Shown here: positions 44,077-61,536 of the stretch, piece after piece | Position numbering within the stretch: the stretch's first letter is position 1 | Layout: each line of letters starts with the position of its first letter | Source: Macrostomum lignano | Lineage: Eukaryota | Direction: 5' to 3' | Length of the DNA: 64,000 bases | NCBI GenBank assembly: GCA_002269645.1 | Contig: NIVC01002722.1 | Location: 62,001-126,000, forward strand | The notes under the pieces: model-generated | Databases searched by the model: none | Told to the model about the DNA's origin: nothing | What the model saw: the letters and a program-made list of their open reading frames with translations, nothing else | Position numbers and translations under genes: made by a program

Positions 44077-44480
44077 TTACTGCCTTTGGGGCAGAAATTT
44101 TCCGAACGCCTCTAGCTCACAGATGGTCAGATATCCCAGGCTACTTTTCACCATGATCTCCTGTCCAACACCCTCGCATGGTAGCGCCTTGGAGCTGAAC
44201 TCTTCGCCATTGCTATACCGACTGCACTCGCTTTTCTCGTCAATATAGATGGCAAAGTTGGTTAATCCGGATCGTCGATTGAGTCGGTTGTAAATTTTGA
44301 CCATCATGAATTGCACCTGATAATCGGTGGCCGCCCTCCACCAGCCGGCTCTTGCACTGTCCACAAAAGCGCAGGTCTGCAGGTGAGTAGACGGATCTTC
44401 CAGGCGGTCATCAATAGCTTTTTCGCACGTGTGGGTGTAGTATGATGAGCTCTGTTTGCAGCGCGTCAGAGGCAGCTTGT
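44077..44480 (-). CDS. Lectin-like domain exon 10, terminal (TCAFV...YNRLNRRSG)
   Basis: CAG acceptor in phase 1, stop TAA, AATAAA at 44043-44038. Confidence 0.75.
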
Positions 44481-59400: not shown

Positions 59401-61536
59401 GATTAAATTGCTTGCTCGTAGGCTCTACTAGCTTGCAAAATGCTATATTAAAATTTAACAACGAAAGAACTGTTTATGTCAAAGTTTAACAAAGCAATGA
59501 TACTAATTAGCACTAACCCGTGATTTTGGTTCAAGTATATGCAAAATAATGTACGTATGTCTGTCAAGCATGAACTATATTGGCTATGCCTATGCTTTTA
59601 TCTGTATAATAACAGGAGAAACAAAGTCGAACTCACGCAGTGCTTTTCCGTAAGCCTCGAACTCGCAGATTGTCAGCTGAGGCAGGCGACTTTTCACCAT
59701 GATCTCCTGGCCGTATCCGTCGCATCGCAGAATCTTAGTGGCAAATCGACTCCAACTTTTGTTGTACCGATTGCACACGTTCTTATCGTCGATAATCACG
59801 TCGAAGTTGGTGAGTCTCTCCTTCAGAATCTCGCGGTTGTAGATTTTGACGCAAATGAACCGCACAGGAAACTCGGTTTTCGCCTTCCACCAGGTGTTTT
59901 CTTTTCCCGTGTGAGCGCAGTTTAATAGACCCAATTTACCTGTATCCAGTTTGCCATCATAAGCCTTGTCGCACAAGTAATTTGTTTCATCCTGGTTCGA
60001 GCCTTGGCTGCAGCTGACGAGTTTGAGTTTTGCTGCGTTGAATGGAGAGTGGCAGTTGAAATTTCAGATGCACACAGAAACACAAATATGTTTTGGAATC
60101 TGTTTCCAACTAACCAATAAAATAACTCTTGCAAGAGTATGCGTGTCTATATGCAAAACAGAATGTGCACTGCTTGTCTATCTATCTATCTATCTATCTA
60201 TCTATCTATCTATCTATCTATCTATCTATCTATCTATCTATCTATCTATCTATCTATCTATCTATCTATCTATCTATCTATCTATCTATCTATCTATCTA
60301 TCTATCTATCTATCTATCTATCTATCTATCTATCTATCTATCTATCTATCTATCTATCTATCTATCTATCTATCTATCTATCTATCTATCTATCTATCTA
60401 TCTATCTATCTATCTATCTATCTATCTATCTATCTATCTATCTATCTATCTATCTATCTATCTATCTATCTATCTATCTATCTATCTATCTATCTATCTA
60501 TCTATCTATCTATCTATCTATCTATCTATCTATCTATCTATCTATCTATCTATCTATCTATCTATCTATCTATCTATCTATCTATCTATCTATCTATCTA
60601 TCTATCTATCTATCTATCTATCTATCTATCTATCTATCTATCTATCTATCTATCTATCTATCTATCTATCTATCTATCTATCTATCTATCTATCTATCTA
60701 TCTATCTATCTATCTGTCTATCTATCTATCTATATAATTGAGGGTGTGTGGCGACCCCCAGTTCTTGGACTGAACTGCCGTACGCAGCCTTCAGATGGCG
60801 CTGAGCAATAGCTGCGGCAGAGGTGTCGGTTGCACATCTGGCCGTTACTCGTAGGGCAGGTGTAATCAATCGATATTCGCATAATATTATTATACTGTTT
60901 TTACTTTTAACACCATTTTCCCTTAAAGATTAACAATAGTGACTGCACAAAGCAGAAACGTACGTATACTTATTCAAAATATGTAAACTGTCAGACAAAA
61001 GGCGCAGATTGCTAGTGCAACTAAAATTTTAACAAACCACTGATTTTCCACTATCCCCCGTGTCTTTCATTAAACTTACTGCATTATTTAGTATATCGGT
61101 TATGCTTTTTTCTCTATAATAGTTAGGAAAAAGTCCAACTCACGCATTGGTTCTCCGAAAGCCTCGAACTCGCAGATTGTCAGCTTTGGCAGGTAACTTT
61201 TCACCATGATCTCATGTCCGTATCCTTCGCATCGCAGAACCTTGGTGGCGAATAGTTTTGGATTTTTGTACCGATTGCACACGTTCTTATCGTCGATGAT
61301 CACTTCGAAGTCGGTCAGTCTCTCCCTCAGAATGTCGCGGTTGTAGATTTTGACGTACACGAAGTGCATGGGATTATCAGTCTTCGCCTTCCACCAGGTG
61401 TTTTGGTTGTCCGTGTGAGCGCAGTTTAATATACCTAATGTACCTCTATCCAGTTTGCCATCATAAGCCTTGAAGCACACGTGCTTCAAGTTATCCCAGT
61501 ACGAGCCTTGGCTGCAGGTGACGAACTCGAATTTTT
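44077..61536 (-). CDS. Multi-domain F-type lectin / F5-8 type C-like protein built from 10 one-domain exons (5' exon not found; at least ~1325 aa if all are included)
   Basis: Ten homologous ~130-aa modules (C..QGS..C.KAYD...CAxT..WW.A...V.IYNR...L..FEV.ID...C...C...GQEIMV...L.ICE.EA.G). All acceptors are phase 1, nine donors are phase 1, and those nine exon lengths are multiples of 3. The last exon has TAA at 44077 and AATAAA ~35 nt later. Confidence 0.75.
44626..44988 (-). mobile_element. Full-length tRNA-derived SINE with A-tail and 12-bp TSD
   Basis: Minus-strand head GGGCCGTAGCCCAGCGGTCTAGCGC...GGCTCGATTCC and A-rich tail. TSD AATTTCCGTGAT at 44614-25 and 44989-45000. Confidence 0.85.
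45079..45477 (-). CDS. Lectin-like domain exon 9 (HCALT...YNRLTKERQ)
   Basis: NAGNAG acceptor (45480/45477), GTAAGA donor, 399 nt, phase 1-1. Confidence 0.8.
45717..46121 (-). CDS. Lectin-like domain exon 8 (NCAIT...YNRLTNRDT)
   Basis: CAG acceptor, GTGAGT donor, 405 nt, phase 1-1. Confidence 0.8.
46541..48628. mobile_element. Foldback-like element: ~220-260-bp internally repetitive TIRs enclosing a (TCTG)n array
   Basis: 46541-46800 (GAGAATTTCCCGCAGG...CTCGTGATTGCCTGTTTACCTT) is the reverse complement of 48411-48628. No clear TSD. Confidence 0.75.
46812..48330. repeat. (TCTG)n microsatellite, ~1.5 kb, with TTAGTG, TGTG and TCTA interruptions
   Basis: Read directly. Confidence 0.98.
48765..49166 (-). 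CDS. Lectin-like domain exon 7 (NCAIT...YNRLTHRDT)
   Basis: CAG acceptor, GTGAGG donor, 402 nt, phase 1-1. Confidence 0.8.
49513..50219 (+). mobile_element. Internally deleted Tc1/IS630-like element A (~155-bp TIRs, TA TSD) retaining the N-terminal HTH
   Basis: TA|TACCTTTTTACG...CGTAAAAAGGTA|TA. The ORF from 49672 ([25 protein letters not shown]...[16 protein letters not shown]...GRV...KGG) resembles a Tc1 paired-like HTH; no DDE domain. Confidence 0.75.
50225..50985 (-). mobile_element. Internally deleted Tc1-like element B (~140-bp TIRs, TA TSD) retaining an HTH remnant
   Basis: TA|TAGCTTTTGGCAGCC...GGCTGCCAAAAGCTA|TA. Minus-strand remnant [25 protein letters not shown]...KGGNR...[13 protein letters not shown]. 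Confidence 0.75.
51103..51507 (-). CDS. Lectin-like domain exon 6 (NCAHT...YNRATRRYR)
   Basis: CAG acceptor, GTGAGT donor, 405 nt, phase 1-1. Confidence 0.8.
51744..52148 (-). CDS. Lectin-like domain exon 5 (HCAIT...YDRLDFKNK)
   Basis: CAG acceptor, GTGAGT donor, 405 nt, phase 1-1. Confidence 0.8.
54036..54434 (-). CDS. Lectin-like domain exon 4 (NCART...YNQLKQREG)
   Basis: CAG acceptor, GTGAGT donor, 399 nt, phase 1-1. Confidence 0.8.
57170..57538 (-). CDS. Lectin-like domain exon 3 (QCAIT...FSRAKQRDS)
   Basis: CAG acceptor, GTAAGT donor, 369 nt, phase 1-1. Confidence 0.8.
57686..58434 (-). mobile_element. Diverged second copy of Tc1-like element B
   Basis: TIR and interior homologous to 50225-50985 ([26 protein letters not shown]). 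Confidence 0.75.
58636..59446 (+). mobile_element. Long-TIR element C (~150-bp TIRs) with HTH-like remnant
   Basis: 58636-58787 is the reverse complement of 59297-59446. Interior reads [28 protein letters not shown]. Shares AATTTAATCCAAGATA with element B. Confidence 0.65.
59637..60032 (-). CDS. Lectin-like domain exon 2 (NCAHT...YNREILKER)
   Basis: CAG acceptor, GTGAGT donor, 396 nt, phase 1-1. Confidence 0.8.
60177..60732. repeat. (TCTA)n microsatellite, ~550 bp, nearly pure
   Basis: Read directly. Confidence 0.98.
60737..60870 (+). mobile_element. 5'-truncated copy of the 35235-35525 SINE
   Basis: TTGAGGGTG.GTGGCGACCCCCAGT.CTTGGACTGAAC.GCCGTACGCAGCCTTCAGATG...GCAGGTGTAATCAAT is shared between the two. 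Confidence 0.85.
61144..61536 (-). CDS. Lectin-like domain exon 1 (NCAHT...YNRDILRER)
   Basis: CAG acceptor, GTGAGT donor, 393 nt, phase 1-1. Confidence 0.8.

Follow-up and report, generated by a model that had tools for sequence, protein, structure and literature searches.

A 64-kb stretch of DNA from Macrostomum lignano (hereafter the window) carries ten exons of a single gene, BOX15_Mlig029438g1, whose product is probably a secreted protein made of 14 tandem F-type lectin domains. We assign a probability of roughly 75% to this reading, in which one gene yields a main mRNA containing every module and the encoded protein acts as a multivalent glycan binder. The predicted product consists of a signal peptide and, after it, the 14 domains alone, and has no membrane anchor. 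One phase 1-1 exon encodes each domain, probably as a result of the tandem duplication of a one-exon module by which the array grew, and the main mRNA is expected to include all of the modules. Such a protein would be highly multivalent, able to cross-link or agglutinate fucosylated and other glycans, with secretions, mucus, microbes or gametes as possible settings.

The window matches M. lignano contig NIVC01002722.1 (assembly Mlig_3_7) with 100% identity over 29.9 kb, and the gene is already annotated there with a protein of 1569 aa (P0004). The spliced translation of the ten window modules, m1–m10, is 99% identical to a deposited M. lignano protein. These modules form the 3′ two thirds of the gene, which continues beyond position 64000; the same contig holds three further modules (B, B2 and C) upstream of m1, outside the window, and stops short of the 5′ end of the gene. 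The complete product is provided by a second copy, BOX15_Mlig002920g1 on contig NIVC01002473.1 (protein P0003, 1875 aa). Its first exon encodes the signal peptide, MTKLLGSLLVAVALAVYGNERTYA, and has its donor in phase 1; after it come the 14 exons of the modules (A, B, B2, C and m1–m10), and hmmsearch on P0003 finds 14 domains end to end. The second copy is near-identical to the window gene, with exon sizes that agree wherever the two overlap. A third copy, also near-identical, on NIVC01002334.1 (protein P0001), carries m1–m10 in the same order. In all three contigs the modules are collinear, and neither exon sizes nor splice sites differ. Redundancy of the M. lignano assembly is known, and stems from chromosome duplication in the sequenced line (PMC5730564). 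The gene has the organization of a phase 1-1 array of duplicated extracellular modules: each module has its own exon, bounded by phase 1 at either end, and the signal-peptide exon likewise ends in phase 1.

Within the window, tblastn with one module as the query detects exactly ten copies; these lie on the minus strand between 44074 and 61540, and the rest of the 64 kb has none. The initial annotation of this DNA, made from the letters alone, had described ten diverged lectin-domain exons without naming a strand; the feature sits on the minus strand, and the count of ten stands for the window, whereas the whole gene has more modules and extends past the window end. The exon structure that it proposed proved correct to the base (Table 1). 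Every module is a single exon (10 of 10), and the nine internal exons measure 369–405 nt, all multiples of 3, with phase 1 at both ends. The tenth is terminal, with a TAA stop and a polyadenylation signal downstream. The splice limits, read from the sequence, show an acceptor AG at every exon, and the donors of the nine internal exons are GTGAGT, GTAAGT, GTGAGG or GTAAGA. Introns from m1 to m10 measure 1111, 2098, 2735, 1887, 236, 1936, 2643, 236 and 598 nt, and the spliced reading frame of m1–m10 is open over 1325 codons. None of these exons ends in T; a stop codon therefore cannot arise at any exon–exon junction, and the earlier statement that any subset of the cassettes can be skipped in frame is literally true.

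The lectin assignment rests on a profile search of the Protein Data Bank (PDB) and on fold comparison, because single modules gave nothing significant in Pfam. Comparison with the Pfam families by HMMER, which had been proposed as a check, gave a divided answer: single modules stay under the cut-offs, whereas the whole protein exceeds that of PF22633 (34.1 bits versus a cut-off of 27.8). A profile built from the ten modules finds striped bass FBP32 (3CQO), the best sequence match among solved structures, with an expectation value (E) of 1.5e-12, and the streptococcal fucose-binding modules of lectinolysin and SpX with E of about 5e-5 to 1e-4. The AlphaFold model of m1 (predicted local distance difference test (pLDDT) 77.4, predicted template-modelling score (pTM) 0.77) is a β-sandwich. 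In a Foldseek search of the PDB, the ten top-ranking matches are F-type lectin domains without exception (entries 2J1R, 3LE0, 3LEK, 1K12 and 3CQO), with a probability of 1.00 and template-modelling (TM) scores of 0.57–0.72. UniRef entry names concur (FTP, the fucolectin tachylectin-4 pentraxin-1 domain), and each exon contains the whole fold, from first to last strand. The F-type lectin assignment of the initial annotation holds on this profile and fold evidence: as judged by sequence profiles and a predicted structure, the modules are diverged F-type lectin domains with the β-jellyroll of that family.

Exon use and divergence of the modules

The GenBank models of Mlig_3_7 are derived from RNA sequencing (RNA-seq), by StringTie/TACO together with a de novo transcriptome, and are not ab initio predictions (PMC5730564). 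Three such models join, in series, every module that they cover: all 14 in P0003, and m1–m10 whole plus upstream modules in P0004. Counted in the deposited transcript-derived proteins, 8, 13 (12 whole and 1 partial) and 14 modules stand in series, and the junctions that we read from the sequence are the junctions found in P0001, P0003 and P0004. One of the two possibilities raised initially, a very long tandem lectin, is supported by these models, which join up to 14 modules (P0003). The accompanying comparison with Dscam, where a cluster contributes a single exon, is contradicted by the presence of all of the exons in the transcripts. The acceptor of m9 is a tandem cagCAG (45478–45483, minus strand), at which the deposited transcripts take the upstream AG (…METEKL…); use of the downstream AG would give one codon fewer.

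The modules differ mostly in their loops, with a mean column entropy of 1.37 compared with 0.85 in the strands. The three loops to which divergence had been ascribed (after QGS, before NCAxT and the NR loop) are indeed peaks of variability; the KNPKL loop, the linker and the stretch following the T of CAxT are further ones. A young group, with synonymous divergence (dS) of about 0.2 and 67–76% identity, comprises modules A, B, C, m1 and m2; m6 is related to it more distantly (dS about 0.4–0.6), m7 and m8 form a pair with 77% identity, and divergence is greatest in m5 and m10. No difference separates B from B2, which lie within a 3.4-kb tandem duplicate of 99.86% identity on the window contig (Table 1), and the second copy likewise has two B-type module exons (locus L002). 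The duplicate could be a very recent duplication, the result of gene conversion or an assembly artefact. Its near-identity suggests that the array is therefore still growing.

Between the three copies, over m1–m10, the ratio of nonsynonymous to synonymous divergence (dN/dS) is 0.15–0.35 and every exon is intact. Among the young modules it is 0.5–0.95; with m6 included, it is 0.2–0.9 in strands and 0.5–1.3 in loops, and no pair is clearly above 1. The values for strands and loops are pairwise Nei–Gojobori estimates, with columns split according to the secondary structure of the m1 model, and in the young modules and m6 this partition gives no clear signal of positive selection. The pattern fits relaxed constraint, or else diversifying selection acting on a few sites, and is not decisive. 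In the third copy, m1 (L001, 8311–8703) differs from the other two by 8.5 nonsynonymous and 1.5 synonymous changes, which are small numbers.

These data bear on the other possibility raised initially, which we consider unlikely, namely combinatorial cassette skipping, in which varying subsets of exons would give rise to lectins differing in the number and kind of their domains, as in oyster bindin. It would draw on the freedom to omit any subset in frame without a stop, on module differences that are greatest in the loops and the sugar-binding triad, and on the dN/dS values of the young modules (0.5–0.95, with loops reaching 1.3). Precedents exist in the splicing of oyster bindin (PMC5712786) and in a Xenopus tropicalis isoform that lacks one module-length stretch. 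One deposited protein also points this way: in P0002 (UniRef A0A1I8FVT9), a model that comes from the older ML2 assembly, m8 follows m3 directly. However, its order runs B, B2, a C/m2 chimera, m3, m8, m9 and m9 again, followed by intron read-through, and its module content is unlike that of all three Mlig_3_7 copies. We looked for the DNA behind P0002 and found none on record. Given the chimera, the doubled m9 and the read-through, this protein is explained at least as well by collapse in the assembly, an erroneous prediction or a structural variant as by splicing. Moreover, in the better assembly each of the three models built from RNA-seq holds every covered module in order, and dN/dS never clearly exceeds 1. 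Phase symmetry, for its part, is expected from duplication alone, since extracellular modules that have been duplicated ordinarily show a symmetric 1-1 phase (exon shuffling); such a phase allows skipping and is not evidence that skipping is used. Nothing yet shows mixing of exons, and the available transcript models include every domain. The fullest form of this idea, in which the 13 internal exons are skipped in regulated combinations to produce a secreted lectin repertoire varying in domain number and sugar specificity, is in our judgement improbable. If true, it would parallel oyster bindin with whole-domain cassettes and a far larger combinatorial space, and would be a second, independent case of splicing-based lectin diversification.

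Sugar sites and the function of the array

The fucose-binding triad of F-type lectins follows the motif His … Arg-x-Asp-x4-Arg/Lys, which we took from a review (PMC5712786) and located by hidden Markov model (HMM) alignment of the modules to both FBP32 domains and by alignment of the modules with each other. His/Arg/Arg is kept in 6 of the 14 modules: m1, m2 and m6 in the window, and A, B and B2 upstream. In m1, m2 and m6 the spacing, R-D-x4-R, is that of the C-terminal domain of FBP32. The triad is altered in the other eight (m3, m4, m5, m7, m8, m9, m10 and C). The aspartate of the AYDG segment, where F-type lectins carry the cation motif h2DGx, is invariant in all modules, although the segment itself reads AYDG in m1, m2 and m4 and AYDD, AYDN, AIDN, AIDD or AYDS in the others. 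Six cysteines are also invariant across the modules. On the basis of these motifs, the protein would have about six fucose-type sites, in A, B, B2, m1, m2 and m6, and the remaining eight domains may have a changed specificity or have lost it.

The absence of the triad from 8 of the 14 modules would also suit a structural or matrix protein, of mucus, egg shell or an adhesive, in which mostly degenerate lectin folds serve as spacers or protein-binding units and sugar binding is not the main function. The six invariant cysteines, which suggest rigid disulphide-bonded beads, and the known co-option of the F5/8-C superfold for non-sugar ligands (PMC5712786) fit that view. Set against it are the full triad in six modules, maintained under purifying selection, and the aspartate of the AYDG segment, kept in all modules; we see little chance that it is correct. 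Separate small lectin genes, pseudo-exons or a Dscam-like choice of a single exon per mRNA might be expected from exons of similar size in tandem on one strand, but can in practice be set aside: start codons and signal peptides are missing from the individual modules, a stop closes the frame upstream of m1, all exons are intact across the three copies (dN/dS 0.15–0.35), and the transcript-derived proteins carry all modules in series.

The secreted 14-domain lectin that we favour has points of its own against it. Single modules lie below every Pfam cut-off, the best scores being those to F5_F8_type_C_2 (E = 0.0044) and F5/8-C (E = 0.028). Seven of the ten window modules have no canonical triad, and fucose binding by most of the protein is therefore doubtful. 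On the side of the transcripts, TACO applied an isoform-fraction threshold of 0.75, and alternative forms were also pruned for submission (PMC5730564); minor skipped isoforms may occur, as those of low fraction would have been filtered by the annotation pipeline. Short reads, in addition, map ambiguously among similar modules. The 'constitutive' inclusion of all modules should accordingly be read as 'dominant', not as 'only'. Finally, the literature that we searched reports no expression site, ligand or phenotype.

Features of the window and its surroundings

The modules and associated features are listed in Table 1. Two introns of the array share a length of 236 nt (45481–45716 and 51508–51743) and were considered as marks of a two-module duplication unit; they are unrelated on alignment, and the equal length is coincidental. 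Intron 7 contains the microsatellite (CTGT)383 (46814–48345), flanked by 15/16-nt and 57-nt minisatellites (46537–46778 and 48474–48609), and intron 1 contains (TCTA)139 (60177–60733). Open reading frame (ORF) fragments in two further introns encode helix-turn-helix (HTH) segments of Tc1/mariner type: one in intron 6 (49495–50001, plus strand; transposase HTH, HTH_SB, E = 9e-7) and one in intron 2 (58077–58427, minus strand; HTH_29, E = 0.002, a weak match). Both are probably transposon remnants.

Table 1 Lectin modules and associated features (window coordinates unless a locus is named)
Feature	Position	Strand	Description
m1 exon	61144..61536	-	393 nt, phase 1-1; fifth F-type lectin domain of the full protein; H/R/R kept
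m2 exon	59637..60032	-	396 nt, phase 1-1; H/R/R kept
m3 exon	57170..57538	-	369 nt, phase 1-1; shortest module, with a deletion in the loop before CAxT; triad I/R/S
m4 exon	54036..54434	-	399 nt, phase 1-1; triad R/Q/G
m5 exon	51744..52148	-	405 nt, phase 1-1; second most diverged after m10; triad I/R/K
m6 exon	51103..51507	-	405 nt, phase 1-1; H/R/R kept
m7 exon	48765..49166	-	402 nt, phase 1-1; triad I/R/T; nearest relative m8 (77% identity)
m8 exon	45717..46121	-	405 nt, phase 1-1; triad I/R/T
m9 exon	45079..45480	-	402 nt, phase 1-1; triad L/R/R; NR loop with 2-residue insertion
m10 terminal exon	44077..44480	-	404 nt including TAA stop; triad F/R/G
AATAAA polyadenylation signal	44038..44043	-	34 nt past the stop codon
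3′ part of the 8.4-kb intron between module C and m1	61537..64000	-	module C lies outside the window
Module C	outside window, upstream of m1	-	triad Q/R/R
B/B2 duplicate units	L003 3605-7049 and 9926-13371		same contig (NIVC01002722.1), upstream of the window

A convergent neighbour gene, with coding sequence for ankyrin repeats (Ank_2, E = 1e-61), occupies 38832–43330 on the plus strand; about 750 nt separate its 3′ end from the stop codon of the lectin gene. The ORF that follows in this neighbour has a weak match to the Mab-21 C-terminal domain (21.9 bits, under the cut-off of 24.1). Dense minisatellites with periods of 20–62 nt and up to 65 copies fill 2704–20730 and 30231–33681, and exon-sized ORFs among them resemble an FMO (13951–14670, minus strand) and an FAD-dependent oxidoreductase (8867–9667, minus strand). 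The region 22000–30000 is AT-rich (GC content 0.31–0.33 versus 0.40–0.50 elsewhere) and has no ORF of at least 200 aa. Scans of the whole window for tRNA genes and Rfam families found nothing.

Comparison with known systems

The gene is already deposited but unstudied, and its type of domain array is already known. Searches of the literature with three gene identifiers, and with Macrostomum combined with fucolectin or lectin, returned no study of it. Tandem F-type lectin arrays are common in the family (PMC5712786), and a profile search of 1.84 billion representative proteins found 526 relatives, many of them multi-module. The same diverged module subtype occurs elsewhere in M. lignano, in BOX15_Mlig034341g1 (named 'Kringle domain-containing') and in A0A1I8JBX5 and A0A1I8J1D5 ('WSC domain-containing'), with E of 1e-131 to 1e-65. 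These relatives have shorter arrays (six modules in each of the two examined) and names that indicate other domain types, whereas BOX15_Mlig029438g1 consists of lectin modules only.

Outside the flatworms, the best match is an uncharacterised fucolectin of X. tropicalis, LOC100491211 (XP_031759895.1 and isoforms; E = 3.8e-102). It, too, is made almost entirely of tandem F-type lectin domains, 12 in a 1948-aa isoform and 13 in a 2055-aa entry as counted with the flatworm module profile. It differs in being a vertebrate protein with an N-terminal part of roughly 170 residues ahead of the first domain. Its annotated isoform X3 (1800 aa) lacks one stretch of 148 aa, equal to one module, whereas the flatworm models show no such isoform.

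Among lectins of known structure, FBP32 of Morone saxatilis (3CQO) and the Anguilla anguilla agglutinin (AAA; 1K12) share the flatworm fold, with TM scores of 0.68–0.72 at 20–24% identity. These lectins have one or two domains and form trimers. The flatworm modules have an extra N-terminal cysteine pair (C7 and C20) and lack the vicinal Cys–Cys of the eel lectin, and, unlike the domains of FBP32, they are not split by introns.

The sperm bindin of Crassostrea gigas offers a further parallel. It likewise carries tandem F-type lectin domains in a single gene, with the triad kept in some and lost in others. Microsatellites in the introns are common to both genes, but the M. lignano genome is microsatellite-rich anyway. 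The number of bindin repeats, reported to vary by alternative splicing (PMC5712786), is 1–5, compared with 14 domains in the flatworm protein. A mid-domain intron, which is a site of recombination, splits the bindin domain (PMC5712786), whereas the flatworm domain is one uninterrupted exon in all three copies. Bindin is a sperm acrosomal protein, and positive selection and splicing variants are documented for it, unlike for the flatworm gene. Set beside these systems, the M. lignano gene extends tandem F-type lectin arrays to 14 domains in a flatworm, in an array that appears to be still expanding and in which the triad is replaced in most domains. It illustrates how an array grows through the duplication of exons and diverges inside one polypeptide. 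As far as its sequence can tell, its product is also a candidate secreted glycan binder of high multivalency, in a model animal that regenerates and is genetically tractable.

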